From Pelomyxa schiedti (Eukaryota; Protista; Evosea), in the NCBI GenBank assembly GCA_020536535.1, contig JAHLWZ010000048.1, positions 1 to 61,511 of the forward strand: a DNA stretch of 61,511 nucleotides. The letters run 5' to 3'. Below are positions 4,861-56,654 of this stretch, one piece after another (position 1 is the first letter of the stretch; every line of letters begins with the position of its first letter). The position numbers and the translations under genes were made by a program. The notes beneath the pieces are model-generated. The model did not search any database. It had not been told where the DNA came from and saw only the letters and a list, made by a program, of their open reading frames with translations.

Positions 4861-5775
4861 ATGTTGTGGTTCTTCTGTGTTCGTTCCTTTGAACCTGTCA
4901 AGTTTTTGACAAACGAGCTCGAAATACAAGATCTTCAAGTTTGCGAACAGTCGCTCGACGAAGTCAAGGGCACCGAGGCGTGGTGGCGCGCCCGTGAAAT
5001 TACACTCCAGCTCGTTGCTGCCAAATTGGGGTACGTGCCGTCTTTTTTTTTTTTTTTCTTTCTCTTCGTTGTTAAACTGGAGCCACTTGTTTTAAACTGG
5101 TTTTTTCCCCTCGTTGTTCTTCGCTCTGTCTTTACTTCATCATTTTTACCTATTTCTTGTGAATCAACTCAAGAGCTAGTTATCGGTGTCTTACAATTTC
5201 TTTGATTCGATGATAGTATTTAGTTTTTTAGGCCTAACTGGTGTGATAGAAACAGAGCCGGCGGTCTGCAAGACCCTCATTTATGGAAGTATAACCTGAA
5301 AGATGCGTGGTCTCTTGTCGCCTTTTACCTGCCATACGAGGGAATGACTCCTGAGGACCAGCAGCGTGTTGTAATAGATCTCGTGAAAGCCGCTGATTGT
5401 TTTATGCATCCAATGTTTTCCCCGATCCGTTTCACACCAACAACAGTACCTTTGACAGCCACCAAAATCGGTATTGAAGTCTCACTTTTCTCAACTACTT
5501 TCTTATTCCTTGCAGGAACTGAAGTCCGAGAGTCCCTCAACCTTCCTGAAAGCCCCATCGTCCTTGACAATTCTTTTCTCATCTGGTACTCTCCACTTGA
5601 ACTGGAAGTCTCAGAAAAAGCCGTATCTTACATGCCTGGACGAATAGGTTTGAGTAAAATGCGCTGCTACTCCAAAGCCTTGAATGTTGCTGGGTGCCGA
5701 AAGCTTTTCACCAAGATTCCTCTGAAGCTGGAAGTTTCACCTCTGGTTTTCTTTGGAGCTCTCTTTCATAAGGCC
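4861..5775 (+). CDS. NRPS copy A, 5' part only (cut by gap)
   Basis: ATG 4861; introns 5031-5249 and 5471-5515; near-identical to the 5' ends of copies B, C and D. Confidence 0.8.
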
Positions 5776-5875
5776 NNNNNNNNNNNNNNNNNNNNNNNNN
5801 NNNNNNNNNNNNNNNNNNNNNNNNNNNNNNNNNNNNNNNNNNNNNNNNNNNNNNNNNNNNNNNNNNNNNNNNNNN

Positions 5876-7196: not shown

Positions 7197-7333
7197 TTTT
7201 TACATTCGTCTGTATTTTTCCTGTTGAGTTGAACGTGCCCACTCAAGCATGTGGAGATCCGTCCAACAGTCCACCACTTCAGGATTGCTTAGTTGAGCTT
7301 GGTTAACCTAAGTTTTGTTGATCAGGAAACAAA

Positions 7334-8848
7334 ATGGATGGGAGTGGTGCCCCTGAAAGCAAAAGACCACGGCACAACAACACAACAACAACAATAAAAC
7401 CAACACCGGATGCTAAGGGGGACGAACACACAGAGGCAGCTCCTACCCGTGATGAGCACATCGAGCCCCAACAACAACTCGGCACGCGGTTTCCGCCTCC
7501 CCACCAGCCGCGAGAACAGCGTCCAATCGACGAAATTCTGGTGGTACCCAATGTGTTCCTCCACTTGCAGTTCCTGTCCCTGTGCATGTGCGCGCACGCG
7601 AGGTGCGGTGTCAACTCCCCACTCGCGAGAAACTGCAGCCTCGTTCCGGCGTTGGGATTCGCAGCTTCCTCGCTGGTTGTGAGGCTGTTGTGGTCGTGGG
7701 TGCGGTCCGCACTGAGGTGCTACAACGTGGCAGTGTTATCCACAGAAACGACGAAATCGAGAGAGGAGAGGGCTATTGAGGAGAGGTTCAGCGGGTGCAC
7801 TGCCATGGTGGCGTTTGGTGTGTCACCGTTCACACTGGGCGTTGATTGCCACAAGCTGAGGAGGTGGGTTCCCTCTTTTATGGGGAGCAGGGTGCAGTGC
7901 TCCAATCAGTACAATGAACTGGTGTGCAGCAAGGAAAGCCATTTAATCACCACAGAAATAAGGAGGTTCAAGCAGCTTCCTTGGCCAAAGCAGGAAATCC
8001 ACTCAGTACCAGAGCGGGATCACTCAACCACGCTGGCTTTCAGTGCCAAGTGGTGGATATACAGGGATGAAGAGGACAATCTCGTAATTGTGAAGTGGGA
8101 GGGAGAGCACAGGCCATTGCCTTGTGTGAGGCTTCCAGCCAAGCAAAAAGGGGGAGGAGAGTGGTTGTCAGTTTGGATTACACAAAGCAGTGATGATGAT
8201 GAGGCAATTTTCAAGGAGGTAATTTCGTCATCATCAAGTGGTGGTGGCGAAGGTGAATACGAAGAGGCAGTTCGAGATGTGAAGCTGGTTGTTGTCAACC
8301 TTGAGGAGCTTGTCTCTTCCAAACGTGCACTGGCATCGGCAACATGCAACCTTGTGGGAAAACAGAGTGGGTATGTGGCCAAGGCTCTTTGCCTTGTCAA
8401 TGAGTCTGGCCAGAGGGTTTTGGTTGTGCTGCATCAGACCTTCAGGGGATCTGTGATTTACCAGTATAATCATCAGGGAGCAGAGGAAGGAGGAGGTGGT
8501 TCTTTTTCTGTTGTGGAAACGAACTCAGTCCAACAACTTTTCTCACTCTCACAGCTGAACCCAAGGATGTACTGTGTATGGTGTGGAAGCTCAACAAAGA
8601 CTGCAGCCCCCCACTATGAGATCTGGGACTGCAACATGACAAACGGCCCCCTTCGCGTTGTTGTGCCACAACCCACTGAGGACTGGTCCGGTTTATGTGC
8701 CCACAGTGGCTTGCTGATAGGAATCCTGAATAGTCGTTTGGTGGTGTGGGATCCCCTCTCTGGTGTGAATGTGATCACCATCAACCTCACTGGGGAAATG
8801 CGGATACGTTTTCAAGCAACAACTTCTTTCCTGTACTCAAGAGAATAG
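7334..8848 (+). CDS. Lineage-expanded intronless hypothetical protein (HxRCG-motif family)
   Basis: 504-aa ORF; 'QFLSLCMCAHARCGVNSPLAR'; beta-rich C-terminus 'YEIWDCN...PLRVV' shared with the 38611 and 40997 genes. Confidence 0.8.
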   Translation: MDGSGAPESKRPRHNNTTTTIKPTPDAKGDEHTEAAPTRDEHIEPQQQLGTRFPPPHQPREQRPIDEILVVPNVFLHLQFLSLCMCAHARCGVNSPLARNCSLVPALGFAASSLVVRLLWSWVRSALRCYNVAVLSTETTKSREERAIEERFSGCTAMVAFGVSPFTLGVDCHKLRRWVPSFMGSRVQCSNQYNELVCSKESHLITTEIRRFKQLPWPKQEIHSVPERDHSTTLAFSAKWWIYRDEEDNLVIVKWEGEHRPLPCVRLPAKQKGGGEWLSVWITQSSDDDEAIFKEVISSSSSGGGEGEYEEAVRDVKLVVVNLEELVSSKRALASATCNLVGKQSGYVAKALCLVNESGQRVLVVLHQTFRGSVIYQYNHQGAEEGGGGSFSVVETNSVQQLFSLSQLNPRMYCVWCGSSTKTAAPHYEIWDCNMTNGPLRVVVPQPTEDWSGLCAHSGLLIGILNSRLVVWDPLSGVNVITINLTGEMRIRFQATTSFLYSRE

Positions 8849-8921
8849 ACAAGCCTGCTCCCTCCTCGTATTGATACGAAAAAAGAGAAAAAAAATCCTT
8901 TGCAGGGAATTTCAAATTGTA

Positions 8922-10265
8922 ATGATCGACAACGGCAACCAGTTGCAGGTAAATACAACGATACCGACAAGCGCGCAGGGGCAGTGCGTCGCCCTCGCCA
9001 CCGCCTCGTTCTCACGCCGCTGCGGGGCAGCCAGCTGGGCCAGGCTCCTCACGCCCCCGCTGGTCTCCCTCATCTGCTCCCGCCACGTCCTCCCCGCTTC
9101 CCCCGCCGCCCGCGTCGCCATCCACTTTGGCCGCGTCACCGCCAGCGACGACGACGACGACGACGGCAGCAACATAACCGCGGTGGTGGGCGTCTCCCAC
9201 ACCCGCGGCGTCACCTGCCGCGTCGTCGCCGCCCCGAGCGACGGCTGGCGCCTCCTGGGCTGGTGCGCCGGCGCATCCGCCGCCGCGGTGTACGAGAGGC
9301 GCCAGCTCGCGCAGGTGCGGGACGCCGCGACGGGGAGGGTGAGGCACGAGGTGAGGCACCGCGGGGCGATATACAGCGTCCAGGCCGGCGACGCCGTGCA
9401 CGTGAACGGGAGGTGGCTGGTCAGCGACGTGGGCAACGGGTGGACCGGCGAGAGGGAGCTGGTGGTGTGGAGGCTCGAGGGCCTCGAGGTGGATGTTGGC
9501 ATGAAGCTGTGTTTCTCTGAGCCGCGGACTGGGATGGGTATGGGCCCGGCTGTCCAGTGCAGGTGGGTGAAGCTGATGACTGATGTTGTGCCGGGAGGTG
9601 GGGGCACTGCTCATGAAAACGAGGTGGCGGCGCTAGTGTATTCGTATAATTCTGGTGAGAGGGCACTTGTGGTGGCTGATTTGGAGAAAAGCTGGAATGC
9701 ATGCACCACGCCAACGTGCTTTGGTCCGTTGGTGGCGGTGGTGGTGAGGTCATGGCCAGTCCCAGAGCTGCAGCCTTATAATTATCCCTCTCAGGCAGTC
9801 CCAATCCCAGAGCGCGACGATTACCTCGTTCCACTCACCCTGAAAGATCAACTCACTGTCTCGTTGTTCAGTGTCAAATATGGCCGTGTTGTGTCAGAGA
9901 TTCCCTGCGCATTTCATTTCAACAATTCTGCTCTCTTTGACATTGGAAATGGGCTCTTTGGTGTTCACACAACAAAAAACAAACAGAGTGTGTTTGATGG
10001 CAACGGGGATACATCAGTTCCTGTAAACACAATCACCACATTGGGTGATGTTTACCCAAGCAGCCTGTTTGGAGGTGGCGGTGTGATGTGCCTGTTCAAC
10101 GACAACTACACAGCCACTCTTGTTGATCCTGAAACATCATCCATCCTCTTCTCTGTCTCCGTTGTTGGTGGTTTCCACGTCAGATCCCAGAGGTTTTTTC
10201 CCGCTGGTTCCCAAAGCGTGCCGGGCCATTATCTATCCCGTTCTCGTCCTCCTGACCTTCATTAA
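8922..10265 (+). CDS. HxRCG-motif family protein
   Basis: Long intronless ORF; 'AQGQCVALATASFSRRCGAASWARLL'; 'VNGRWLV' and 'VVADLEKS' segments. Confidence 0.75.
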   Translation: MIDNGNQLQVNTTIPTSAQGQCVALATASFSRRCGAASWARLLTPPLVSLICSRHVLPASPAARVAIHFGRVTASDDDDDDGSNITAVVGVSHTRGVTCRVVAAPSDGWRLLGWCAGASAAAVYERRQLAQVRDAATGRVRHEVRHRGAIYSVQAGDAVHVNGRWLVSDVGNGWTGERELVVWRLEGLEVDVGMKLCFSEPRTGMGMGPAVQCRWVKLMTDVVPGGGGTAHENEVAALVYSYNSGERALVVADLEKSWNACTTPTCFGPLVAVVVRSWPVPELQPYNYPSQAVPIPERDDYLVPLTLKDQLTVSLFSVKYGRVVSEIPCAFHFNNSALFDIGNGLFGVHTTKNKQSVFDGNGDTSVPVNTITTLGDVYPSSLFGGGGVMCLFNDNYTATLVDPETSSILFSVSVVGGFHVRSQRFFPAGSQSVPGHYLSRSRPPDLH

Positions 10266-11840: not shown

Positions 11841-11928
11841 CTGTCCCTACCCAACGTCTACAATCCCACACTCACCAGGTTCCGCATGCAAACTCAATAA
11901 GAAATGATGATTTTCAAAAAAAGAGGTG

Positions 11929-13254
11929 ATGGGACTAAACGAATCTCTGCGGCGACGCCAACACGAAGGAGGGGTAGGACGAATACCCACAGCAACAACA
12001 ACAACGGCGCGGTCACAGGCGATGGCCCTACTCTGTGCCCCATTGTCGGAACAACGAAGATCGACTCCAACATCCACACAAGCACTCGCAGAGACACATA
12101 CACATACACATACACATCAACATCAACAATCAACGACGACGCCTGGCGCACGTCGTCCTCCTCTTCTTGGAAAGGGAGGCAGTGACGATTTTGGTGGTGG
12201 GGATGGTGCTCCCCGTCCCATTATTGCAATGATCGAGTGGATACGATCGACGGCGGTGTTTAGGGCGTGGGCTGAGGACTGGGTCCTCAGGCCGTGTGAC
12301 GAGGCCGTGTTCGGGCTGCCAATCAGGAACCACTATTTGCACGTGAGTGTGTCACCAACTCTTGGACTTGTCAGACACTCGTGGTTCGCAATCAGCAGCT
12401 TCTCCGTGGTGCACGGCTGTTTGGGGCACAACAGAGTCCTTCTCAAGTCGCACGTCACCGGGCCTTCCTTGTGTTTCACCATTGAGGAACTGGGTGCCGA
12501 TGATGGAGTGGCACCAAGGCTAGTTTCGGTGCTGGAGACGCCATGCCCTCGCCTGTATTGCAACAGGAAGTGGGTTGTGGGGTTCCCAAAGAATGGGGAG
12601 ATGTGTGTATGGAGGGTTGTTGCCGGTGCTGTAGTGCAACCTGAGATGCACTTTGAAGGGATAGAGGTGGGGAGGGGTATCTTCTCACCGTGGAGTGATG
12701 ATGTTTTGATGGTGTTTTCCTTGGCTCAGTCAAGTGGAAGCTCGGTTCCATTCTGTGACTTGCAAAGCAGCTGCAAAGAGGGGAGACTTGTTGTCACTTC
12801 GAAGGTTCCGTGCAGAGCCCGCTTTTCAAATGGTATTATTTGGAGGCCAAATGGTTCCACTTGCACAGTGAATTATGAGAATTATGAATTATCCTATTTC
12901 CTCGTGGACAGCACGAGTGGCAAGAGAGTGATTCAGTATCCACTGAATACACCTGTGATTCCAATTGGCACCAGTCACATCTTTATCAGAGAGGAGTCGC
13001 AGTTTACCATGCGCCACACAGGAGGCATCACATCAGGCACACCAACACTTTGTGTTCCTTGCACGTGGGCGTCACCATCAACAGCCAACAGCCAACAGTC
13101 GTGCCTCATTGCGTCGACATCGGACCGTCCTGTGCATGGTCAATCCGAAGCCAAGTTCTCACTTCATGATGGTCCAACAGGTCTCCACGTTGGGGATTTC
13201 ACTGTGCCCTTTGACTCTTCTCGTTTGGAATTCGACACCACATTTCTCCTGTAG
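11929..13254 (+). CDS. HxRCG-related family protein (divergent motif)
   Basis: Intronless ORF of about 441 aa; 'ARSQAMALL', 'VSVSPTLGLV', 'CNRKWVV'. Confidence 0.75.
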   Translation: MGLNESLRRRQHEGGVGRIPTATTTTARSQAMALLCAPLSEQRRSTPTSTQALAETHTHTHTHQHQQSTTTPGARRPPLLGKGGSDDFGGGDGAPRPIIAMIEWIRSTAVFRAWAEDWVLRPCDEAVFGLPIRNHYLHVSVSPTLGLVRHSWFAISSFSVVHGCLGHNRVLLKSHVTGPSLCFTIEELGADDGVAPRLVSVLETPCPRLYCNRKWVVGFPKNGEMCVWRVVAGAVVQPEMHFEGIEVGRGIFSPWSDDVLMVFSLAQSSGSSVPFCDLQSSCKEGRLVVTSKVPCRARFSNGIIWRPNGSTCTVNYENYELSYFLVDSTSGKRVIQYPLNTPVIPIGTSHIFIREESQFTMRHTGGITSGTPTLCVPCTWASPSTANSQQSCLIASTSDRPVHGQSEAKFSLHDGPTGLHVGDFTVPFDSSRLEFDTTFLL

Positions 13255-13547: not shown

Positions 13548-16500
13548 ATGCTGTGGTTTTTCTGCCAGCAATCGTTTGATCCCCTCAAGTTTTTGGAGAA
13601 TGCAGTAGAAACACCATTGGATATTCAATTTTTCTCGCAGTCGCTAGACGAACGCAAGGGCCCCGAGGCGTGGTGGCGCGCCCGTGAAATTACACTCCAG
13701 CTCGTTGCTTCAAAATTGGGGTATGTTTTGTGTTCCCTGTTATTTTTTTTTTTCCCCCGTCGCGTTCTTCGGCTCTCTCTGTCTTTACACAATAATTAAT
13801 TATTTTGATACGAATAAATTCTGTTTGGAACGACCACCTATGTTCTTTTTTTTTTTGCTTGATTTCTCACTGCCTTTACTCATTTCCTACGGAACGCTCT
13901 TTGTGGTTTGATTTGTAGTCTTTAAGTGTTGTAGACCTAACTAATGTGACTATGGTGTGACAGAAACAGAGCTGGCGGTCTGCAAGACCCTCATTTATGG
14001 AGGTATAACCTGAAAGATGAGTGGTCTCTTGTTGCCTTTTACCTGCCATACGAGGGAATGACTCCTGAGGACCAGCAGCGTGTTGTAATAGACCTTGTGA
14101 AAGCCGCTGATTGTTTTATGCATCCGATGTTTTCCCCGATCCGTTTCACACCAACGACGGTACCTTTGACAACCACCAAGATTGGTCTCTGGTCTCTCTC
14201 ACCTTCTCAGCTACACTCTTATTCCTTGCAGGAACTGAAGTCCGAGAGTCTCTCAACCTTCCTGAAAGTCCCATCGTCCGTGACAATACTTTTCTCATCT
14301 GGTACTCTCCACTTGAACTGGAAGTCTCAGAAAAAGCCGTGTCTTGCATGCCTGGACGAATAGGTTTGACTAAAATGCGCTGCTACTCCAAAGCCTTGAA
14401 TGTTGCTGGGTGCCGAAAGCTTTTCACCAAGATTCCTCTGAAGCTGGAAGTTTCACCTCTGGTTTTCTTTGGAGCTCTCTTTCATAAGGCCATTGTATCA
14501 ATCACTGGGCATGCCCATCCAATCTGGCATCCCTGTCCCGTGCTCAAAGGCCCTTCAGAGCCAACAAAACCGTTCGCTTATGCACCTTTCTTTGAACCCA
14601 AAGATGGCTATGGCGAATTTGGTTTGGATTTCCAACAGGTTGTTTCACATTTCAATAGCCAACACCGTCATTACAGGAGAGTCCTGACGGAATCTCTCGA
14701 CACCCCAACGACAACTTCTTCTGAGGATGACCCATTCATTTTCTGCAGTGATTATGTTGCTCACAATGGCTCAGTTCTCCTCATTGTAAACGACCATATA
14801 TCTTGCCCACAGGCATATTTCGAAGATGATGCTGCAAGTATCTTAGCTCGCGGTGAACACCCATTTGCACTCACACTTATTATCACGCGACATTCAAAGG
14901 ACAATTACATCACAATCTCTTGTCTGAACTCCAAGTACACCTGTTCTCCTGTGCAGATAAATGACTTGTGTGAAAATCTTTCCGTTCTGGCGCAAAGAAT
15001 TATCAACGATTCCACTTTATGCCTCCAGGCAACAGCATTACCTTGCCTCCCTTCCAGCATTTACTTTTATGCAGCAATGAAGTGGAACTCTGATGCCAGT
15101 CGAGTCAACCATCAAGGCCCTTTTTGGCACAACAGACCCCTGATTCCAACGGAAGAGTTTATGTGGAAAGATTGGCAAAACAACCCGCGGTCATTGCAGA
15201 AGAAAGGTGGCCAACTTTGTGTATGGCCGTCTGTTAAACACTTCCGTACAAAAGTTCTACACCAGTGGAGGAATACGGTATTTCTTTTGTAAAATAGTAT
15301 TCCCTTGCTTAACGCAAGAAATCAGGTGGATTATGTTGGAGCTGTGCCGGCTAAATACATATCTGATGAGCCGGTGAACTCTGTGTCATATTTTGACAAT
15401 ACCCGTGCAAAATGGATTGTGCCACAAATACCTGGATTCTGTGACGCCGACGAAAAAACGAGAGACAGCTGGCTCCTCCAGGTCTACAATATGCGCTCAA
15501 TCAATACACTTGCCGGCAGCCGTCCTTGTTTCAAGTCTGATAGAGCCTCAGAATTCATAAATGAACTTTTGCTTCAGCCCATGAAGTTACTATCTCCAGC
15601 AGCAGAATACCGCTGGGCAGTAAAACTTGGAGAAAACAAGTATGGTACTGTCGGGAACGGACACCACGTGTGGCTGGATGGTATTGGTGGTGCTATTGAA
15701 TTTGACATTTTGTTTAGCTCTTGGTTCTTTCCCTATTGGTCAATTGCAAAATATACTTCACTCTACCAGCTTGGTCGGTTCCCTCAATTTTCTCAGTTTC
15801 ATGATGCTGTCAAACCTTTTTACACACCTTCCAGGATTTCTGCTCGGCATCAGTACTGGGAAGACACAATAAAACGGTATTCCTTGATTGTAAAGAGTTC
15901 AGTTATTTGGCCATGGAGCAGCAACTCCGAAATCCCTTGGAAGAAAGGAATACGTTCTGCTGTGTTTGAAGTGCCCTCTTCTGTTCTCATGAAATTACAC
16001 ACCCTCCGGCAGCAGGAGAACGCCACACCTTTTCATCTGTTAGCATCTTTACTGGTTTCCTTCTTATACACTCTTTCAAATCCAGAAACACAAGGGCTTT
16101 GCATTTCTTATCCAGCTTCACTGCGCCCTACTCGTAATCAATATTGGTCTGGAACTCATGCCAACATGTTGCCTTTATTTGTACAGTTTGAGAAAACAGT
16201 TACACCACGAAACATTTTGCAAGCAATCAAAACGCAAAGGAATTCAGACAGGGACAACCAACATACACTTTGGCCAGAAATTGCCAAACTCATGACTGAC
16301 AATGGCTTAGTTGTCCCCAACATAATGCTTGCTGACACCCTTTTGAACCTTTATAACCTACACCCAGCCATATCTTCCCAGATTCAGCAAACGATATATC
16401 AGTCTCACAAAGATGTACTTTATGACTTGACGTTGCTATATGAATGGGCTCCAGATAAATCAAAACTTGCCCTGAGGTGGGAATTCCGCAGGGCACTGTT

Positions 16501-18347
16501 CTTCTTTTCAACAACACCAGCCTTGTTTGAAGACTTGTTCAAAAAATTCTTGGAGGATGTTGCAGATCAACCAGATAACCCTGGCGTTTTGACCCACATG
16601 CTATTTATTCCTCCTGGTGCCTCAGTTGCGCCCACCTTATCTTTTCCGGAGGAGTTCACAGCAATGCCACAGTGGAATTGGTACGGTAAACTCCATCTCA
16701 GGCAGTCAGGTGTGAACTCTGCTCCAATTGAGTTCACCATCCCTCTGGATTCCGAAAATTCTGTTCTTCAAGACTGGCAACTGAAACTCTGTCAAACTTG
16801 GGAAGACATTCTACTGTGGGCTTCTGTTGTATACTGGAGCAAAGTCTCGGACATGAATGAAGCAGACTCCGTGATATTTGGTGCTTTGGGCAGTAGGAAT
16901 GAAGTCCACTTCATTGATGTGAGTGTGAGAAAGGTAGCCTCAGCGCTTACTCTTCAAGAGTCTCTTGAGTGCTTTTTGGCTTCCAAGAAAGATGCCTGTT
17001 GCATGGTTGGGCAGGCTGCGTTTTGCACTGTTTATGGTACGACTTCTCATGCCAATACCAATTTCAAGTCCTTGTGGGAGATGTGGGCCGCAAAGCCGGC
17101 ACTCTTCCTTGGCCTGGAGGAGGGAGCAATCAGGATTCTCTGTGACCCGTCATACAACCTTGCTCCCAGCAGATACGAGCATGCAGCACAGTCAATTTTG
17201 CATATCCTCTTGAGTGCTGCCAAATGTCCCGGAACTCCCCTCAAAGCCCTCAACTTGATTGACAACTCCCCCTCTGAGAAAGAACTCATTGGCAAAGCAT
17301 TTGTCCAATCGCATCCCTCAGATTCGCCACTTGTGACACCATGGACCACTCTGGTTGATGCTTTCATTTTTCAGGTGAAAAGGAACCCAAGCATCAAGAT
17401 ATGGATTGGAAACAAAGCAGCAGGGCCCGTCGAATCACACACTATCACAGAACTGTTTCAGCTGGCAACAGCCTTGGCCATCTCAAAGCCGATTGTTCAA
17501 CGGTGCACACACAACGACGTTGTATTTCTGTCCTTTCCCAGAGGCTGGGAAGCGATTATTGCCCTGTGGGGTGTTCTGCTTGCTGGGGGTGCATGCTGCC
17601 CTCTGGATCCTGAGATTCCGGAAGCAAGGGCACACCAATTAATTGACAAAGTGAAGTGCATGTGTAAATCCGGCCTGGAACCATTGGTGTTGACAACCTC
17701 CAAGCTTGCAGATCATGGCCTCCGGGAGAAAATTGTTCTAAAAGGAGAACTCATTGTTGTCCAACCATCTACTGCCCAACTTCCCCCACAGGAACTGGTC
17801 CCAGTGAGCACCCAAGTTCACCAACCAACACCCGACGATTTGGCCTTTGTCCTGTTTACCAGTGGGACTTCAGGGCAGCCCAAGGCAATACCAACCAGGC
17901 ACAGAGCTTGGATTTCACGAATGATAAAAAGTGCACCGTTTGTTTTCATGCTGGATAAAGAAGACCCTACTTCACTCATTTCCACCCGGCCCCGATCCTC
18001 CTCCTGTGGTTGCATGGCCCACGTGTGCTCTCCATACTTTGACGTTGCCTTATTCGAGCAGACTTTCCCTCTTGTGTTTGGAATGGATATGGGCATTGTT
18101 GGTGAGTGGGTTCCGGATTTGCATCTTTTGGCCAACTTGGCACAGCAATCCCATTTGACACACATGACAGCAGTTCCAAGTTTCCTGAAAGCACTCACTT
18201 CAAGAGAGGAGTTGTGTGCAATTGTGGCGAAGTCAATGAAATGCGTTGCCAGTGGTGGTGAAGCTCTTTCTGTCGAATTCGCAGACAAACTTGCTTCCTC
18301 GTTTCCGAATGCATCAATTGTAAATGCGTATGGACCTGCTGAGGCAG
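13548..18347 (+). CDS. NRPS copy B (half C - C - half C - A), 3' end in gap
   Basis: Introns 13721-13963, 14185-14231, 15278-15325. C-domain HHVWLDG at 15662-15682. A-domain motifs FTSGTSGQPK, FDV, GGEAL, NAYGPAE. Confidence 0.9.
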
Positions 18348-18599
18348 NNNNNNNNNNNNNNNNNNNNNNNNNNNNNNNNNNNNNNNNNNNNNNNNNNNNN
18401 NNNNNNNNNNNNNNNNNNNNNNNNNNNNNNNNNNNNNNNNNNNNNNNACGACTTGAAATCGAGGTGAACGATCAGGTAGATTTCCGCGAACTTGATTTCC
18501 TAAGATGTCAGGTCCGAGTGCTGACTCAGCAGGTCAGTCTCTCAGTCTCAGTGTTCATGCTCGTGCTCGCAGAGAGTTTGCTTGTGTATTCTACAGAAT

Positions 18600-19050
18600 C
18601 ACACACTTGGTCATTCTTACAACCATTCTAAGAACCCAATGCAGGCTGTTGGCAGTTTGCAGCCTGTTGTTGAGCCCCAACTGGCCTCGGTGCAACGCCG
18701 TAAGCATCGGCACCAACTTCCGCAATCGTGTATTCCAACGCAGAAGTCCCAGCAGCTCGGCCGAGCTCAGCAGCACCCTGTCGTTCCCCAAACAGCCACG
18801 CACAGCAGCCGAAGCCATTATGAACCAAGAGTGCCTTACAAGCATGGTAAGTGACACACTCACAAACAGGTAGTGATCCCTGATCGGCAGACTGAACACA
18901 ACCTCGTCGCAGCTCCTGAGAACCCAGTCCACAGCCCACCTCCGACGATTGTATCCACCGAATCATCGATGGTGACACACAACAGCAACAACAACCAACG
19001 GCGGCAGCTGGGGGGCGGCGGTACGTTGCTCCGTCGTTTTCGCATTGGCT
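18600..19050 (-). pseudogene. Decayed homolog of the 11929-13254 gene
   Basis: 'DWVLRSCDEVVFSLPIRDHYLFVSVSLTMLVRHSWF...GCLGNDRVLL' aligns to 'DWVLRPCDEAVFGLPIRNHYLHVSVSPTLGLVRHSWF...GCLGHNRVLL'; frameshifted and truncated. Confidence 0.8.
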
Positions 19051-19418
19051 CTGCAAGTTTCAGATGAAGGCCATCACCTGTGACTTGGCTGTGGTTCCTG
19101 CTGTTGATAAGGACCAACATGGTTATTTGTTAAGTATGTGTTTTGAGCGATTTCGTTTGTAACACTTGTTTCAAAGAAAATCTCTCCTCAAGAGATCACC
19201 TGAATATTTGCACATACATGTTCTCCTCTCCTGTACATTAGAACTAGTGCAACTAACATACCTAACTATGGTCACTGTGGATGATGTTGTCCAATGATTT
19301 CTCGTTTTCAGTTGCCGCTCAGCGTCTGAGAAAAGTTCCCAAGAGACAAGAGCTAAAAACCCCTCAGAGATCTCATAAACAAGGGGTGAGCACGCCTGCA
19401 CCCACTCCAGTCATACAC

Positions 19419-22400
19419 ATGTTGTGGTTCTTCTGTGTTCGTTCCTTCGAACCTGCCAAGTTTTTGACAAACGAGCTCGAAATACAAGATCTCCAAGTGT
19501 GCGAACAGTCGCTCGACGAAGTCAAGGGCACCGAGGCGTGGTGGTGCGCCCGTGAAATTACACTCCAGCTCGTTGCTGCCAAATTGGGGTACGTGCCGTC
19601 TTTTTTTTTTTTTTTTCTCCTCGTTGTTAAACTGGAGCCACTTGTTTAAGCTGGGTTTTTTTTTTTTTTCCCCTTCGTTGTTCTTCGCTCTGTCTTTACT
19701 TCATCATTTTTTACCTATTTCTTGTGAATCAACTCAAGGGTATTAAAATTAAAAGAGCTAGTTATCGGTGTCTTACAATTTCTTTGATTCGATGATAGTA
19801 TTTAGTTTTTTAGGCCTAACTAGTGTGACAGAAACAGAGCCGGCGGTCTGCAAGACCCTCATTTATGGAAGTATAACCTGAAAGATGCGTGGTCTCTTGT
19901 TGCCTTTTACCTGCCGTACGAGGGAATGACTCCTGAGGACCAGCAGCGTGTTGTAATAGATCTCGTGAAAGCTGCTGATTGTTTTATGCATCCAATGTTT
20001 TCCCCGATCCGTTTCACACCAACAACAGTACCTTTGACAGCCACCAAAATCGGTATTGAAGTCTCACTTTCTCAACTACTTTCTTATTCCTTGCAGGAAC
20101 TGAAGTCCGAGAGTCCCTCAACCTTCCTGAAAGTCCCATTGTCCGTGACAATTCTTTTCTCATCTGGTACTCTCCACTTGAACTGGAAGGCTCGGGAAAA
20201 GCCGTGTCTTATATGCCTGGACGAATAGGTTTGAATAAAATGCGCTGCTACTCCAAAGCCTTGAATGTTGCTGGGTCCCGCAAGCTTTTTACAAAGATTC
20301 CTCTGAGGCTAGAAGTTTCTCCTCTGGTATTTTTTGGAGCTCTCTTTCATAAGGCCATTGTATCCATCACTGGGCATTCCCATCCAATCTGGCATCCTTG
20401 TACAGTGCTCAAGAAGAAAGACCCTTCAGAGCCAACAAAACCGTTCGCTTATGCACCTTTCTTTGAACCCAAAGATGGCTATGGCGAATTTGGTTTGGAT
20501 TTCCAAAAGCTTGTTTCACATTTCCATAGTCAACACTGTCATTATAGGCAAGTCCTAACGGACTCTCTCGACACCCCAACGTCAACTTCTTCTGAGGATG
20601 ACCCATTCATTTTCTGCAGTGATTATGTTGCTCACAATGGCTCAGTTCTCCTCATTGTAAACGACCATATATCTTGCCCACAGGCATATTTTGAAGATGA
20701 TGCTGCAAGTATCTTAGCTCGCGGTGAACACCCTTTTGCACTCACACTTATTGTCACGCGACATTCCAAGGATAATTACATCACAATCTCTTGTCTGAAC
20801 TCCAAGTACACCTGTTCTCCCGTGCAGATAAATGACTTGTGTGAAAATCTTTCCGTTCTGGCACAAAGAATTATCAACGATTCCACTCTACGCCTCCAGA
20901 CCACGGCATTACCTTGCCTCCCTTCCAACATTCACTTGTATGCAGCAATGAAGTGGAACTCCGATGCCAGTCGAGTCAGCCATCAAGGCCCTTTTTGGCA
21001 CAACAGACCCCTGACTCCAACAGAAGAGTTTATGTGGAAAGACTGGCAAAACAACCCGCGGTCATTGCAGAAGAAAATTGGCTGGAATACTATCTGGCCA
21101 TCTGTTAAACACTTCCGGATGAAAGTTCTGCACCAGTGGATGAACACTGTATTTCTTTTTTTGTAAGACAGTGTTACCTTTCTTAACCAAGAAATCAGAT
21201 AGATTATGTTGGAGCTGTGTCAGCTAAATACATCCCTGATGCACCAGCGGACTCTGTGTCATTTTTGAACAGAACCCGCGCAAGATGGATTGTGCCACAA
21301 ATACCTGGATTCTGTGACGCCGACGAAAAAACGAGAGAGAGTTGGCTCCTCCAAGTCTACAATATGCGCTCAATCAACTCACTTGCTGGAAGCCGTCCTT
21401 GTTTCAAGTCAGACAGAGCCTCAGAATTCGTAAAGGAGGCACTGCTGCAGCCCATGAAGTTACGATCTCCAGCAGCGGAATACCGCGTGGCGGTAAAACT
21501 TGGAAAAAACAAGTATAGTACTGTCGGGCATGGACACCACGTGTGGCTGGATGCCCTTGGTGGTGCTATTGAAATTGACATTTTGTGTCACTCCTGGTTC
21601 TTTCCATATTGGTCAATTGCAAAATATACTTCACTCTACCAGCTTGGTCGGTTTCCTCCATTTTCACAGTATCATGATGCCGTCAGACCTTTTTACACAC
21701 CTGCCAGGATTGCAACTCGACATCAATACTGGGAAGACACAATAAAACGGTATTCCTTGATCGGAAAGAGTTCAGTTACCTGGCCATGGAGCAGCAACTC
21801 CGAAATCCCTTGGAAGAAAGGAATACGTTCTGCTGTGTTTGAGGTGCCCTCTTCTGTTCTCATTAAATTACACGCTCTCCGGCAGCAGGAGACTGCCACC
21901 CCTTTTCAGCTTCTGGCATCTTTGCTGGTTTCCTTCTTATACACTCTTTCAAATCCGGAAACACAAGGTCTGTGCATTTCTTATCCAGCTTCACTGCGCC
22001 CCACTCAGAATCAATATTGGTCCGGCACTCATGTCAACATGTTGCCTTTATTTGTACAGTTGGAGAAAACTGTGACACTCAGGAACATTTTGCGGGCAGT
22101 CAAAAAACAAAGGAATGCAGACAGGGACAACCAACACACACTTTGGCCGGAAATTGTCAAACTCATGAGTGAGAACGGCTTAGTTGTCCCCAACATAATG
22201 CTTGCTGACACCATTTTGAATGTTTATTCCCTGCACCCGACAATTTCCTCGCAGATTCAACTTTCTATGCTCCACTCTCACAAAGAGGTACTTTATGACC
22301 TTACGTTGCTTTATGAATGGGCTCCAGATAAATCAAAACTTGCCCTGAGGTGGGAATTCCGGAGGGCACTGTTCTTCTATTCAACAACGCCAGCCTTGTT

Positions 22401-23062: not shown

Positions 23063-23162
23063 NNNNNNNNNNNNNNNNNNNNNNNNNNNNNNNNNNNNNN
23101 NNNNNNNNNNNNNNNNNNNNNNNNNNNNNNNNNNNNNNNNNNNNNNNNNNNNNNNNNNNNNN

Positions 23163-40996: not shown

Positions 40997-42373
40997 TCAA
41001 CAGAAGGAGGTGATGCCTTTAATTTTAACAGTAGTTTGAACTGCCAATGGGGAAGTGTTAACTGTGAGAACAACAGTGGGACTGCTGCAGGCAGCCTCAG
41101 CGACATTTATCTCATTTCTTGTTGAGAGGATCACAAACCTTGGTGCACCAACTACTTTGTGGATTTGTGGGGTCCACTGAACCACCCTCAGTGGCTTATG
41201 TGGTTCATTGCAATCATAGAATACCAGGCTCTGTGATGCCAGTGATTTCACACAGAATACTGACTTGCTTATTTGAGACACAGAGGAAAAGTCTTCCAAG
41301 AAGTAAAGGGGTGGGAGACAGCCTAACAGGCAGGAGCCTTCCTCAAGCTCATAAAGGTATGCACTGAAAGGACTTGGATGGAAACTGTGCACTATCCACA
41401 CGTTAATGCTGCGTCCACCCTTTGTCTTCCTCATCAGAAACTGGAAACTTCTGTCATACTGGAAGGTGGCAATGGATGTGCTCAACACGGTGTATTTACC
41501 ACTGCAATGTGTCTGTGCCACATCCACGACTTCCAACAAAGTGGATGATTCCCCATACCTTCTCTTCACCAGAAGCCAGTTGGGGTGAAACTTGTCCAGC
41601 TCTGCGGCCAAAACCACCCTCCTCTTTGAATTCACAGGTACAGCAACTAGAACACTGCCTTTGGCTGGAGTGTCAGAACCCCTGCCATCACCTGTCACCC
41701 TCAAGTTCAGGTCAGTAACGGTCAACTTATTACCCTCCACAGCAACCCACCACCTCTTGCTGGCATCCCACAGCCTTTCATCAATCAGGTCTCTACACCA
41801 GTGGAGGTCCCACTCCTTCCCAGTCACAGTGTCAATCATGTTATACCTCTTCCTCTCTGGGGACCATTCAGGGGAAAGTGGAACTGGGATCCTGATGAAC
41901 CTTGTGCAGTCAACATATTTCTCAGTCCACCTGGTCTCGTGAATGACAGAAGGAACAGCAGAAGTGACGCCAAGAAGGAGTGGTGACACACGGAAGCAAA
42001 CAGAGCAGTAGTCATGCACTTCTCCATTATTGCAGACATCAAGAAGGGCCCGAATTCCCACAGCACCAAAGCAGAAGTAATCCTCCCACATTATTCTCAG
42101 CAGAATTGGAGACGGTAGCACTGGCACGCCCACTCCTCCCTCGCGAGGGAGCAAGTTGTTGTCGCCGGCGGTTGAAGTTAGTGTGGTGGAGCGGCCTGAT
42201 GTTGGCGCCGTTGGTGATGCAAGTTCTAATTGTGGGACTACGGACAGGACTCTTGGGGTGCTGCGTGCCCCGCAGCGAGGGTGAGACGACATCAACAGGG
42301 CGAGGAACTGGTCTTGTGCCCTCGTTGGCCGAACAACGACCATGTCACTCACGCACCACTGTGTATCGTTCAT
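40997..42373 (-). CDS. HxRCG-motif family protein, tandem paralog of 38611-40029
   Basis: 458-aa ORF; 'DQFLALLMSSHPRCGARSTPRVL'; shares 'VTGKEWDxHW' and 'EVVDVAQTH' with its neighbour. Confidence 0.85.
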   Translation of the reverse strand: MNDTQWCVSDMVVVRPTRAQDQFLALLMSSHPRCGARSTPRVLSVVPQLELASPTAPTSGRSTTLTSTAGDNNLLPREGGVGVPVLPSPILLRIMWEDYFCFGAVGIRALLDVCNNGEVHDYCSVCFRVSPLLLGVTSAVPSVIHETRWTEKYVDCTRFIRIPVPLSPEWSPERKRYNMIDTVTGKEWDLHWCRDLIDERLWDASKRWWVAVEGNKLTVTDLNLRVTGDGRGSDTPAKGSVLVAVPVNSKRRVVLAAELDKFHPNWLLVKRRYGESSTLLEVVDVAQTHCSGKYTVLSTSIATFQYDRSFQFLMRKTKGGRSINVWIVHSFHPSPFSAYLYELEEGSCLLGCLPPLYFLEDFSSVSQISKSVFCVKSLASQSLVFYDCNEPHKPLRVVQWTPQIHKVVGAPRFVILSTRNEINVAEAACSSPTVVLTVNTSPLAVQTTVKIKGITSFC

Positions 42374-43485: not shown

Positions 43486-43589
43486 AGAAAAGTGGCTGGT
43501 AGGAAGTTCGAAATAAGTTGTTTGTAGACTACTCAGTGTGGTGATGATTACATTTCCTTTTTGTTTAGGGTTGGTTGGCGGGGCGGCCC

Positions 43590-50836: not shown

Positions 50837-51151
50837 TCAACACCCACGCAAGCACACACATCACAAACCTCCTCGCCTTTCGCAAAAAATCGGGAATACT
50901 TTTGGTCGGCGAACATTTCAGAGACACGTAAAATCAAGAAGGGCAACGACCATCGCAGTTGCGTGTACTTCTTGAAAGGAAAACGTCGGCGAACGTTTTT
51001 GATTCAGTGATTTTCGGAGCTTCCGTTCGTTTTTTGTTCAAAAAAAAAAAAGAAAAGGCAACGCTCAGAGCGAAGATCTCGGCCACGAACGAACCACAAC
51101 AAATAGTGCCGACACAGAGTGTGACAAATACAAAAGAAACAAAGGCAGCAC

Positions 51152-54100
51152 ATGTTGTGGTTTTTCTGCCGTCGGGCGTTTGATCCCGTCAAGTTTTTGA
51201 CGGGCGTGCTTGAAGTTCAAGATCTTCAAGTTTGCGAGCAGTCGCTCGACGACACCAAGGGCACCGAGGCGTGGTGGCGCGCCCGTGAAATTACCCTCCA
51301 GCTCGTTGCCTCAAAATTGGGGTATGTGTAGTCCGCCTTGTTTCTTTTTGGTTTTTTCCCCCTCCCCCCCGTCGTTTGTCTCAATTTTTCTATCGATTTC
51401 TTTTTAAACTTTAAATAATAAAATTGGGGTGTTTAAATACCCCGTTCTTTAGTTCTCCTCCGTCTTTACGCAATTCTTCCGATTTTTTTTTACTTGATTT
51501 TAATAAATCTTTTAAGTTCTAACGCTTTGTAATCCAGAAACAGAGCTGGCGGTCTGCAAGACCCTCATTTATGGAAATATAACCTGAAAGATGAGTGGTC
51601 TCTTGTTGCATTTTACTTGCCGTATGAAGGAATGACTCCGGCTGACCAGCAGCGTGTTGTAATAGATCTCGTGAAAGCTGCTGGCTGTTTTATACATACT
51701 ATGCTTTCTCCGATGCGTTTCACACCAACAACAGTACCTTTGACAGCCACCAAAATCGGTATTGAAGTCTCACTTTCTCAACTACTTTCTTATTCCTTGC
51801 AGGAACTGAAGTCCGAGAGTCCCTCAACCTTCCTGAAAGTCCCATTGTCCGTGACAATTCTTTTCTCATCTGGTACTCTCCACTTGAACTGGAAGGCTCG
51901 GGAAAAGCCGTGTCTTATATGCCTGGACGAATAGGTTTGAATAAAATGCGCTGCTACTCCAAAGCCTTGAATGTTGCTGGGTCCCGCAAGCTTTTTACAA
52001 AGATTCCTCTGAGGCTAGAAGTTTCTCCTCTGGTATTTTTTGGAGCTCTCTTTCATAAGGCCATTGTATCCATCACTGGGCATTCCCATCCAATCTGGCA
52101 TCCTTGTACAGTGCTCAAGAAGAAAGACCCTTCAGAGCCAACAAAACCGTTCGCTTATGCACCTTTCTTTGAACCCAAAGATGGCTATGGCGAATTTGGT
52201 TTGGATTTCCAAAAGCTTGTTTCACATTTCCATAGTCAACACTGTCATTATAGGCAAGTCCTAACGGACTCTCTCGACACCCCAACGTCAACTTCTTCTG
52301 AGGATGACCCATTCATTTTCTGCAGTGATTATGTTGCTCACAATGGCTCAGTTCTCCTCATTGTAAACGACCATATATCTTGCCCACAGGCATATTTTGA
52401 AGATGATGCTGCAAGTATCTTAGCTCGTGGTGAACACCCATTTGCACTCACACTTATTGTCACGCGACATTCAAAGGATAATTACATCACAATCTCTTGT
52501 CTGAACTCCAAGTACACCTGTTCTCCCGTGCAGATAAATGACTTGTGCGAAAATCTTTCCGTTCTGGCACAAAGAATTATCAACGATTCCACTCTACGCC
52601 TCCAGACCACGGCATTACCTTGTCTCCCTTCCAACATTCACTTGTATGCAGCAATGAAGTGGAACTCCGATGCCAATCGAGTCAGCCATCAAGGCCCTTT
52701 TTGGCACAACAGACCCCTGACTCCAACAGAAGAGTTTATGTGGAAAGATTGGCAAAACAACTCGCGGTCATTGCAGAAGAAAATCGGCTCGTATTGTATC
52801 TGGCCATCTGCTAAACAATTCCGGACGAAAGTCCTGCACCAGTGGATGAACGCCGTATTTCTTTGTAAAATAGTATTCCCTTGCTCAACCAAGAAATCAG
52901 GTGGACTACGTCGGAGCTGTGTCAGCTAAATACATCCCTGATGAACCGGCGAACTCTGTGTCATATTTTGACATTACCCGTGCAAAATGGATTGTGCCAC
53001 AAATACCTGGATTCCGTGATGCCGACGCTAAAACGAGAGACAGCTGGTTCCTCCAAGTCTACAATATGCGCTCAATCAACTCACTTGCCGGAAGCCGTCC
53101 TTATTTCAAGTCAGACAGAGCCTCAGAATTCGTAAATGAGGCAATGCTTCAGCCCATGAATTTACGATCTCCAACAGGAGAATACCGCTGGGCAGTAAAA
53201 CTTGGAAAAAACAGGTATAGTACTGCCGGGAGCGGACATCACGTGTGGCTGGATGCCCTTGGTGGTGCTATTGAACTTGATATTTTGTTTGACTCTTGGT
53301 TCTTTCCCTATTGGTCAGTTGCAAAATATACTTCACTCTTTCAACTTGGCCGGTTTCCTCCATTTTCACAGTATCATGACGCCGTCAAACGTTTTTACAC
53401 ACCTTCCACGATTACCACTCGACATCAATACTGGGAAGACACAATAAAACGGTATTCCTTGATTGGAAAGAGTTCAGTTATTTGGCCCTGGAGCAGCAAC
53501 TCCGAAATCCCTTGGAAGAAAGGAATACGTTCTGCTGTGTTTGAGGTGCCCTCTTCTGTTCTCATTTCATTACACACCCTCCGGCAGCAGGAGAACGCCA
53601 CCCCTTTTCATCTTCTGGCATCTTTGCTGGTTTCCTTCTTATACACTCTTTCAAATCCGGAAACACAAGGTCTGTGCATTTCTTATCCAGCTTCACTGCG
53701 CCCCACTCAGAATCAATATTGGTCCGGCACTCATGTCAACATGTTGCCTTTATTTGTGCAGTTGGAGAAAACTGTTACACTCAGGAACATTTTGCGAGCA
53801 GTCAAAACACAAAGGAATTCAGACAGGGACAACCAACAAACACTTTGGCCGGAAATTGTCCAACTCATGAGCGAGCATGGCTTAGTTGTCCCCAACATAA
53901 TGCTTGCTGATACCATTTTGAAACTTTATTCCCTTCATCCAACCATTTCCTCCCAGGTTCAACTTTCGATACTCCACTCTCACAAAGATGTACTTTATGA
54001 CTTGACGTTGCTATATGAATGGGCTCCAGATAAATCAAAGCTTGCCCTGAGGTGGGAATTCCGGAGGGCCCTGTTCTTCTACTCAACAACACCAGCGTTG

Positions 54101-56654
54101 TTTGAAGACTTGTTCAAAAAATTCTTGGAGGATGTTGCAGATCAACCAGATAACCCTGGAATTTTGACCCACAGGCTATTTATTCCTCCCGGTGCCTCAG
54201 TTGCTCCCACCTTATCTATTCCGGCGGAGTTCACAGCAATGCCACAGTGGAACTGGTACGGCAAACTCCATCCCAGGCAGTCAGGTGTGAACTCTGCTCC
54301 AATTGAGTTCACCATCCCTCTGGATTCCGAAAATTCTATTCTTCGAGACTGGCAACTGAAAATCAACCAAACATGGGAGGACATTTTGTTGTGGGCTTCT
54401 GTTGTTTTCTGGAGCAAAGTCTCTGACATGAATGAAGCAGATTCCGTGATATTTGGTGCTTTGGGCAGTAGGAATGAAGTCCACTTCATTGATGTGAGTG
54501 TGAGAAAGGTAGGATCAGTGCTTAATCTTCAAGAGTCTCTTGAGTGCTTTTTGGCTTCCAAGAAAGATGCCTGTTGCATGGTTGGGCAGGCTGCGTTTTG
54601 CACTGTTTATGGTACGACTTCTCATGCCAATACCAATTTCAAGTCCTTGTGGGAGATGTGGGCTGCAAAGCCCGCACTCTTCCTTGGCCTGGAGGAGGGG
54701 GCAATCAAGATTCTCTGCGACCCGTCATACAACCTTGCTCCCAGCAGATACGAGCATGCAGCACAGTCAATTTTGCATATCCTCTTGAGTTCTGCCAAAT
54801 GCCCCGGAACTCCCCTCAAAGCTCTCAACTTGATTGACAACTCCTCCTCTGAGAAAGAACTCATTGGCAAAGCATTTGTCCAATCACATCCCTCAGATTC
54901 GCCACTTGTGACACCATGGACAACTCTGGTCGATGCCTTCATTTTTCAGGTGAAAAGGAACCCAAGCATCAAGATATGGATTGGAAACAAAGCAGCAGGG
55001 CCCGTCGAATCACACACTATCACAGAACTGTTTCAGCTGGCAACAGCCTTGGCCATCTCAAAGCCGATTGTTCAACGGTGCACACACAACGACGTTGTAT
55101 TTCTGTCCTTTCCCAGAGGCTGGGAAGCCGTCATTGCCCTGTGGGGTGTTCTGCTTGCTGGAGGTGCATGTTGCCCTCTGGATCCTGAGATTCCAGAAGC
55201 AAGGGCACACCAATTAATTGACAAAGTGAGATTCATGTGCAAATCGGGCCTGGAGCCACTGGTGTTGACAACCTCCAAGCTGGCAGAGCACTGTCTCCGG
55301 GAGAAAATTGGTCTGAAAGGCGAGGTCAGTGTTGTCCAACCAGCCACTTCCCAGCTTCCCCCACAGGAACTGGTCCCAGTGAGCACCCAAGAACACCAAC
55401 CAACACCTGATGATTTGGCCTTTGTCCTGTTTACCAGTGGGACTTCAGGGCAGCCCAAGGCAATACCAACCAGGCACAGAGCTTGGATTTCACGAATGAT
55501 AAAAAGTGCACCATTTGTTTTCATGCTGGACAAAGAAGATCCCACTTCCCCAATTTCGACCCGGCCCCGATCCTCCTCCTGTGGTTGCATGGCCCACGTG
55601 TGCTCTCCATACTTTGACGTTGCCTTATTCGAGCAGACTTTCCCTCTTGTGTTCGGAATGGATATGGGCATTGTTGGTGAGTGGGTTCCGGATTTGCATC
55701 TTTTGGCCAATTTGGCACAGCAATCCCATTTGACACACATGACAGCAGTTCCAAGTTTCCTGAAAGCACTCACTTCAAGAGAGGAGTTGTGTGCAATTGT
55801 TGCGAAGTCAATGAAATGCGTTGCCAGTGGTGGTGAAGCTCTTTCTGTCGAATTCGCAGACAAACTTGCTTCCTCGTTTCCGAATGCATCAATTGTAAAT
55901 GCGTATGGACCTGCTGAGGCAGCATACGTTTACTCTTGTTTTGAATACCATCCTGAGAATAACAGCGCAATGTCCGATGTCGAAAAGGCCACACGGACAG
56001 TTCCGATTGGGAAACCCCTCCCCGGTGACGGTGCTATTATTCTGGATGGTGATACTCACCAACCAGTTCCGTTTGGGGTTCCTGGTGAACTGTGTATCCT
56101 CAGCCCATGTCTTACAAAAGGTTACTTGAATGACTCTGCCGAAACAGCAAAACACTTCATTCGGGCGCCTCCTGAAGTGTGTGCCATAGTTTCGCATGGA
56201 GATCTCCCTTCTTTGTTGAGGGAAGACTCAGTGTTGTACCTCACTGGCGATTATGTGAGGTGGAATGATAATTTCGAGCTGGAGTACATCCGGAGAACTT
56301 GCCAAAACAAAAATCAAGTCAAAGTGCATGGGATGAGGGTGGAAACTGAGGAAATTGCCTTTTACATCCGAAGTTACCACTCTTCAATCACTGACGTCGT
56401 TGTGTGCCTGAGCAAGGGCAACTTGATTGCCTACATTGAAAATGCCTCCATTCACAACAGCGATGAAGAGAACTCACTGCGCCGAGGGTTGCATGGAAGA
56501 CTGAAGCAGCAGCTTCCTCGCTACATGGTTCCATACTTTTATGTTATCCTTCCAACATTCCCCCACACAACATCGGGGAAGCTTGACCATAAAGCCTTTC
56601 CTCCACCGCTTCCAACCAGAGATCTTCCCCTTGACAGTGACCCACAATCTGTTG
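51152..56654 (+). CDS. NRPS copy D, most complete (full A domain; carrier domain expected in the gap)
   Basis: HHVWLDA at 53237-53257. A-domain motifs FTSGTSGQPK, NAYGPAE, PIGKP, GELCI...KGYLN, YLTGD, QVKVHGMRVE, LPRYMVP, TSGKLD. Third intron 52855-52900. Confidence 0.92.

Follow-up and report, generated by a model that had tools for sequence, protein, structure and literature searches.

Background

Enzymes that join a nonribosomal peptide synthetase (NRPS) to a polyketide synthase (PKS) are common in bacteria and known in fungi. Bacterial hybrids with the order condensation (C), adenylation (A), carrier (T), ketosynthase (KS), acyltransferase (AT) and a final carrier, C-A-T-KS-AT-...-T, include the colibactin ClbB-type proteins and cyanobacterial terminal NRPS-to-PKS modules. 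Among fungal enzymes, TAS1 ends after its KS, without an AT or acyl carrier protein (ACP), and the KS is used for cyclising release, not for extension. This tenuazonic acid synthetase is a eukaryotic single-polypeptide hybrid in which C, A and a peptidyl carrier protein (PCP) precede the KS, and it produces a tetramic acid from one amino acid (PMC4640141). Hybrid NRPS-PKS genes also occur in dinoflagellates (PMC4647583, PMC5725682), and PKS-1/NRPS-1 is found in C. elegans (PMC8363725). Here, we describe a gene family in the amoeba Pelomyxa schiedti that very probably belongs among these hybrids; its 5' halves lie within a stretch of 61,511 nt (assembly GCA_020536535.1, contig JAHLWZ010000048.1, positions 1–61,511 of the forward strand), the whole of which is called the window.

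P. schiedti is an anaerobic amoeba housing three prokaryotic endosymbionts, one methanogen and two bacteria, and its genome has a mean of 7.4 introns per gene. The window is scaffold C48 of an assembly of 52,367,397 bases and 5,337 scaffolds, figures that agree with the published single-cell assembly (52.4 Mb, 5337 scaffolds; PMC8887013). Reads from seven amplified cells were pooled and assembled by SPAdes with k up to 121, together with Nanopore reads, and the contigs were scaffolded by P_RNA_scaffolder; these methods explain most of the oddities in the assembly of the family. A preliminary description of the window, made from its sequence, had proposed a recently expanded family of C-A-type NRPS genes. 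The evidence presented here confirms its observations and supports its interpretation in part: in all likelihood, the family encodes a single-polypeptide hybrid NRPS-PKS with the architecture C-A-T-KS-AT-T, in four paralogous nuclear genes of which the window holds the 5' halves.

The domain order is that of the bacterial hybrids, and so is the putative logic, whereby an (acyl-)aminoacyl thioester would be passed to the KS and extended with malonyl; the best matches among solved structures are likewise bacterial PKS or NRPS proteins (7zma, 8xjy, CurL 4mz0 and LgrA 6mfy). Compared with bacterial hybrids, however, the Pelomyxa family is only 26–32% identical, possesses three introns, an extra N-terminal region of 480 aa and an insert of 190 aa, and lacks ketoreductase (KR), dehydratase (DH), enoylreductase (ER) and thioesterase (TE) domains; it consists of stand-alone proteins with at least four paralogs and no visible operon-like cluster. 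TAS1 is the best analogy for the proposed chemistry, by its architecture, although AT and ACP follow the KS in Pelomyxa. In fungal-type PKS-NRPS enzymes (KS-AT-...-ACP-C-A-T-R, where R is a reductase) the PKS comes first, and the Pelomyxa order is the reverse. The dinoflagellate and C. elegans hybrids are nuclear, intron-bearing and often multi-copy, but they belong to other lineages and have other architectures.

Results

Gene copies and exon structure

Self-BLAST and a repeat search identified four copies with 91–94% nucleotide identity: A (4295–5775), B (13548–18347), C (18865–23062) and D (51149–56654). Their start codons lie at 4861, 13548, 19419 and 51152 respectively, which are the four positions given previously. 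Copy A is present as its 5' part only (4861–5775, plus strand; exons 4861–5030, 5250–5470 and 5516–5775), with GT/AG introns of 219 and 45 nt, and is cut by a gap at 5776. Copy B (13548–18347, plus strand; exons 13548–13720, 13964–14184, 14232–15277 and 15326–18347) has introns of 243, 47 and 48 nt and stops inside the adenylation domain, directly past the A5 motif YGPAEA. Copy C (19419–23062, plus strand; exons 19419–19588, 19832–20052, 20097–21148 and 21199–23062) stops between the C and A domains. The most complete is copy D (51152–56654, plus strand; exons 51152–51321, 51538–51758, 51803–52854 and 52901–56654), which stops 20 aa past the A10 motif (SGKLDHKA).

All four were therefore 5' halves only, each ending exactly at a 100-N gap (5776–5875 for A, 18348–18447 for B, 23063–23162 for C and 56655–56754 for D), as had been noticed before. 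No overlap was found across any of these four gaps, and the sequence to the right of each mismatched copy D or scaffold C176 (see below) at the equivalent position of the gene. Searching the window by tblastn identified no T, KS, AT or ACP coding sequence beyond the last 40 aa of copy D. It follows from the missing overlaps, the unrelated right flanks and the tblastn result that the two sides of each gap are not continuous; open reading frames (ORFs) apparently spanning the gaps result from the translation of N and are artefactual.

Intron positions were taken from a multiple alignment and mapped on copy D. Three positions were common to all copies as far as each extends, always with GT..AG ends (intron 3 in B, C and D). 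Intron 1 of copy D (51322–51537, plus strand) measures 216 nt, against 219 in A and 243 in both B and C, and its splicing was seen in an RNA contig. Intron 2 (51759–51802, plus strand; GTATTG...TTGCAG, phase 1) occupies the same position in A, B, C and D, with 44 nt in D and 45, 47 and 44 nt in A, B and C; the 1- and 3-nt indels at this position were confined to the intron. Intron 3 (52855–52900, plus strand; GTATTT...ATCAG, phase 0) has 46 nt in D, 48 in B and 50 in C at the same position, and lies 73 codons before the first residue of copy D matched to condensation in Pfam. Differences in intron length were not multiples of three, whereas the exon indels all were. Once spliced, the frames were open up to the gaps for 217 (A), 1487 (B), 1102 (C) and 1732 (D) codons; a TAA in the frame of copy C falls within intron 3.

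The four copies are eukaryotic nuclear genes, as the preliminary description maintained, because they share introns, because intron 1 is spliced in RNA, and because copy D stands in one gap-free block with the eukaryote-type genes UBA/UCH, GMPPB and Sel1. It might be imagined that DNA of bacteria or endosymbionts was wrongly binned with that of the amoeba, given three resident prokaryotes and the fact that, outside Pelomyxa, the proteins nearest to the A and KS-AT parts come from bacteria. Yet such DNA would not be expected to have three GT..AG introns, one of them proven to be spliced, or to be contiguous with those neighbours; the G-C content of the gene equals its surroundings (46.6% versus 47.3% for the window), and aligning the C domain against 185,579 bacterial and archaeal species genomes and JGI metagenomes produced no close relative. 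The chance of contamination is negligible.

Domains encoded in the window

Applied to the large exon, Pfam returned Condensation (PF00668; cut-off 30.6 bits) at 36–49 bits in B, C and D, with 48.8 bits for copy C, and AMP-binding at 127–178 bits. The condensation domain of copy D (53120–54157, plus strand; PF00668 at 46–49 bits) is divergent, and its best match in the PDB was 4zxh (E = 0.07). Nevertheless, its active-site motif HHVWLD (HHxxxD), found at 53237–53254, is invariant in B, C and D, and HHVWLDA can be read in translation. The adenylation domain of copy D, comprising core and C-terminal subdomain (55076–56581, plus strand), matched PF00501 at 178 bits and TIGR01733 at 244 bits. Its motifs are A3 TSGTSGQPKA, A4 YFDVA, A5 NAYGPAEA, A7 YLTGDY and A10 SGKLDHK; core motifs from A3 to A10 are readable, including Asp235 of the FDxS motif and the lysine of A10, while the match to AMP-binding_C was weak. 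The condensation motif and canonical adenylation motifs reported earlier were thereby verified.

Two regions of the protein lie outside these domains. In copy D, the orphan region within exon 3 (51805–52854, plus strand) forms the bulk of an N-terminal region of approximately 480 aa, for which three short exons code, and an extra stretch of approximately 190 aa without sequence homology lies between the C and A domains (54191–54760, plus strand). Exon 3 had no match in Pfam, NCBIfam or the PDB, and neither exon 2, exon 3 nor the 190-aa insert matched any of 390 NRPS and PKS proteins (phmmer, filters off). Within the genome, exon 3 occurred only in this family, in four or five distinct versions. 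Searching with a protein language model produced Condensation-like clusters for exon 3 (score 0.96) and for the insert, which is a lead only. Comparing exon 3 with the C domain by hhalign aligned HSHPIWH with GHHVWLD at a non-significant probability of 0.3%, and BLASTP of exon 3 against exon 4 found no match. An AlphaFold2 model of exon 3, built from a three-paralog alignment, was unusable, with a pLDDT (predicted local distance difference test) of 33.

The 3' halves on scaffold C176

When the whole assembly was searched with the big exon of copy D, its real continuation was located on scaffold C176. The last 121 nt of copy D (56534–56654) were 100% identical to C176:2261–2381, and the gap-free segment C176:2261–3473 encodes, in one frame, the end of the A domain with A10, followed by a PP-binding domain and the beginning of a ketosynthase. 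The last 121 nt of that segment (C176:3353–3473) recur with 100% identity at 3574–3694, after which follow KS_C, the KS-AT linker, AT, a second PP-binding domain and a stop at 6228. Since 121 is the last k-mer size used by SPAdes, the overlaps were interpreted as graph adjacencies, and the intervening 100-N 'gaps' as not real.

The PCP was matched by PF00550 at 23.6–24.9 bits (cut-off 20.8) on both C176:2261–3473 and C176:1602–2160, in frame past A10; these segments overlap copy D by 121 and 102 identical nt respectively. A carrier domain downstream, which the earlier reading had anticipated, was thus recovered. The ketosynthase scored 115 bits with PF00109 and 90 bits with PF02801, and its Cys-His-His residues are intact (DAAC, ECHGAA, NIGHS); the acyltransferase scored 38.9 bits with PF00698 (AHSLGE), and the second carrier (ACP) 24.9–26.6 bits with PF00550 (GGAASM). 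Both carrier domains keep their serine. No KR, DH, ER, TE or reductase domain was found in the C176-linked gene model. The open frame runs uninterrupted from 52901 to the stop for approximately 7.4 kb, and with exons 1–3 the predicted protein has approximately 2,940 aa. Exons were searched singly, while the joined model was used in scripts only, for frame, stops and dN/dS (the ratio of nonsynonymous to synonymous divergence).

Similarity between paralogs ceases 13–30 nt past the stop. There are at least four distinct 3' ends, with stops at 6228, 12434 and 13901 on C176, plus another on C3044. The assembler broke every copy because the paralogs share identical 121-mers, their 3' parts being near-identical, and the 3' halves were gathered on C176. 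This scaffold mirrors the window, in that several 3' halves are strung together in one orientation, separated by 100 N, and some of its gaps have identical overlaps of 121 nt. A SAM-domain gene is situated downstream of the first stop (C176 7841–8800).

Of the C-A architecture ending in a TE or reductase that was first proposed, the ending was not upheld, since a C-A-T-KS-AT-T hybrid without a release domain was found instead. A plain NRPS family, C-A(-T-TE/R), whose missing 3' ends contain NRPS domains only, would agree with the window itself, where C and A domains alone are seen. But the sole sequences in the genome that overlap the 3' end of copy D run in frame into PP-binding and ketosynthase domains, and then to AT, ACP and stop, and the continuation provided neither TE nor reductase; consequently, a plain NRPS is highly improbable.

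Transcription and phosphopantetheinyl transferase

Contigs from a single-cell RNA-seq library of the same P. schiedti study were mapped to copy D only. One of them (X3 record 17) joins 51178–51320 to 51537–51636 without mismatch, skipping the 216-nt GT..AG intron 1, and seven others lie on exons 3 and 4; one more fits the D-like copy better. Copy D is therefore transcribed and its intron 1 is spliced. Introns 2 and 3 rest on conservation, GT..AG ends and frame.

A gene for the phosphopantetheinyl transferase (PPTase), as sought following the preliminary description, was found on C561; it is of the Sfp type and bears the motif FWCLKESYIKA. Two near-identical PPTase fragments (FWCLKESYIKAVGIGLGFDL) occur on this scaffold, at C561:21307–21441 and 24953–25231, 3.6 kb apart and with one beside an N run; the pair is probably a further scaffolding duplicate.

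Paralogy, selection and gene conversion

Pairwise synonymous divergence (dS) among the copies was 0.13–0.30 and pairwise dN/dS was 0.12–0.31, with no stops, which indicates purifying selection. Three lineages, B, D and A/C, have intron 1 sequences that defied alignment with one another. Upstream, approximately 560 bp were common to A and C only (4295–4858 matches 18865–19416), and the other flanks were unrelated. Copies A, B, C and D are paralogs and not alleles, because their flanks are distinct and intron 1 has diverged. The original suggestion of a recently expanded family holds with respect to a paralogous family, but 'recently' is too strong for this level of dS and for introns that are unalignable between lineages.

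Had allelic or strain-level versions of only one or two loci been assembled repeatedly from seven pooled, whole-genome-amplified cells, fragments such as the small D-like contigs (C3807, C3182, C5265 and C176:1–1501), which are 95–98% identical to copy D, would be expected; DNA runs also contain D-like variants at 95–99% identity, and the possible haplotigs in the window discussed below (96.7% identity) might be cited likewise. These fragments may indeed represent alleles or strain differences among the pooled cells, one D-like set being 97–98% identical. Between A, B, C and D, however, 6–9% of nucleotides differ, in addition to the differences of dS, intron 1 and upstream flanks given above, and exon 3 exists in four or five distinct versions; it is quite improbable that one or two loci account for all four, and the preliminary description was borne out in treating them as separate genes.

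Divergence was distributed unevenly. Copies C and D were identical over codons 150–300 and 98% identical in exon 3, while differing by 8% elsewhere (19832–21148 versus 51538–52854), and dS varied from 0 to 0.5 along the gene. The identity tract and the uneven dS indicate gene conversion between paralogs, which also explains the failure of the assembler. Nonsynonymous divergence (dN) peaked at codons 400–650, a span running from the last part of exon 3 through the first half of the C domain, where omega reached 0.5–0.6 but stayed below 1; the A domain was strongly constrained (omega 0.03–0.2). The C-domain divergence between copies may reflect different acyl donors. The copies probably load the same amino acid, because B, D and the D-like copy do not differ in the A4–A5 pocket stretch.

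All four copies are placed on one scaffold in one orientation, and every join is a 100-N gap without overlap. The joins probably derive from RNA-pair scaffolding, in which pairs mapping across paralogs could have strung the contigs together; the arrangement may be a scaffolding artefact, and a shared scaffold does not establish a tandem array.

Relatives and origin

A word search with residues 1–720 of the big exon against 5.8 billion proteins produced no match. The A domain retrieved bacterial proteins only, at 32% identity or less, and KS-AT-ACP retrieved Pelomyxa paralogs at 36% and bacterial type I PKS at 31% or less. The A and KS-AT searches used a length filter that drops long eukaryotic megasynthases, so the bacterial matches do not prove a bacterial origin. 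An exhaustive HMMER search with the C-A region among 1.84 billion representatives was uninformative on origin: the top 150 were all multi-module NRPSs of 4,789–7,864 aa, which head the list because the scores of their several A domains add up, and no ortholog-like match was found among them. Gene transfer from bacteria is a plausible origin; the enzyme core is free of introns in a genome with a mean of 7.4 per gene.

The closest relatives of the PKS half, at 36–39% identity, are two stand-alone KS-AT-ACP proteins from the same genome, P0152 (C151:14116–16716) and P0153 (C753:22782–25325), with 1118 and 1143 aa. They are 78% identical to each other, lack an NRPS module and are distant from the family. 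C753 and C151 also bear NRPS modules, and so P0152 and P0153 may be in biosynthetic clusters. Condensation-domain matches number at least 36 over the whole genome, which also has several families of PKS. Many of these Condensation matches (on C1181, C424, C753, C151, C123, C259, C318 and others) are far more canonical, with E down to 4e-90, and lie in stop-free frames of 2,400–2,545 aa; many are at contig ends.

The family had been called undescribed. This is accurate for the literature, where no paper tying Pelomyxa, Mastigamoeba or Archamoebae to NRPS or PKS was found, but not for GenBank, where 3' fragments bear automatically assigned names, 'polyketide synthase type I [Pelomyxa schiedti]' among them; NCBI labels proteins on C176, C151 and C753 as those of Pelomyxa schiedti. 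As far as was found, then, the kind of enzyme is already known, its occurrence is in a lineage without a described member, and the family is lineage-specific.

Other features of the window

The sequence after the gap of copy D (56755–61511) is a copy of 29792–34568 in the same orientation, 96.7% identical over 4.8 kb. The duplicate carries a UBA/UCH deubiquitinase-like gene on the minus strand, and its second copy is the last block of the scaffold. A haplotig that originated in the pooled cells and was attached through RNA-pair scaffolding would explain this block, as would a genuine segmental duplication. A gap of 35 N at 697–731 is an artefact: its flanks overlap by 117 identical bases, which therefore stand on both sides.

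An ORF at 24531–25154 (plus strand) contains a Vint (Hint-like) domain (E = 1.8e-6), and upstream of it a proline-rich open frame of 300 aa (23165–24064) had no family match. Long ORFs of 440–800 aa without a Pfam match were present at 784–3198 (minus), 7334–8848 (plus), 8871–10265 (plus), 11926–13254 (plus), 38611–40029 (minus) and 40997–42373 (minus), an unusually high number of orphan ORFs for 60 kb.

Discussion

Several observations weigh against reading these genes as functional hybrid synthases. The whole gene was never seen on one contig; the full-length model is a path of k-mer overlaps, such that the union of NRPS and PKS modules in one frame is shown for the family, while the path for a single copy could mix paralogs. 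The carrier domains are weak (23–27 bits) and have unusual serine motifs, LINSL in the PCP and GAASM in the ACP. In the AT, alanine replaces glycine before HSLGE, and PSHS stands where HAFH or YASH is usual, for which reason the choice of substrate is not predictable. TIGR01733 scored below its trusted cut-off of 317 bits, and neither the 190-aa insert nor the first 480 aa of the protein is accounted for. No release domain (TE, reductase or terminal C) was found past the ACP, where 53 low-complexity residues precede the stop. RNA coverage was sparse; the evidence from it concerns copy D as present in the window, hence the NRPS half, and does not extend to introns 2 and 3.

Some of these features are what would be expected of a decaying, non-functional family, left over from an old gene transfer, with transcription no higher than noise and no product: the release domain is missing, carrier and AT motifs are atypical, RNA is very sparse, and of copy A only a 5' fragment is seen. 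Decay is unlikely, however, where spliced frames remain open for 217–1732 codons, exon indels are all in frame, dN/dS is well below 1 (0.12–0.31) and lower still in the A domain (down to 0.03–0.10), and C, A, KS and AT all retain their catalytic residues. A maintained family of hybrid NRPS-PKS genes is, in our judgement, considerably the better account of the data.

On this basis, a reaction sequence may be proposed from the domain order and from known systems such as TAS1; its dependence on domain order should be counted among the reservations above. The A domain would load one amino acid onto the PCP, and the C domain would acylate the amine of that amino acid, with an acyl-coenzyme A (acyl-CoA) or an acyl or peptidyl carrier in trans as donor. 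KS-AT-ACP would then add one malonyl (C2) unit without reduction, giving a beta-keto-gamma-(acyl)amino thioester. In the absence of a release domain, release would be in trans or spontaneous; a trans-acting enzyme might free the product, or else cyclisation, which would give a tetramate or pyrrolinone-type ring. The further suggestion that tetramate- or pyrrolinone-like products derived from acyl-amino acids, with an acyl donor varying by paralog, act on symbionts or prey is speculative and has only a small chance of being correct in full. The roles put forward in the preliminary description, namely control of symbionts, handling of prey or defence, are likewise conjectural.

Assembly-line enzymes for natural products are rarely documented in heterotrophic protists, and for slime moulds a single non-ribosomal peptide is named in a recent review (PMC11900508). 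In the published assembly, each Pelomyxa gene is divided over two scaffolds, with the consequence that automatic annotation sees fragments only. With a bacterial-type, intron-free core (an exon of approximately 7.4 kb) behind a short, intron-rich 5' region, the gene is a candidate for transfer followed by a host-type 5' end. If the suggestion of tetramate- or pyrrolinone-like products acting on symbionts or prey is true, Archamoebae would gain their first characterised assembly line for secondary metabolites. A transcribed and selectively maintained family of at least four megasynthases suggests that small molecules are made by the host within the consortium of amoeba, methanogen and bacteria.

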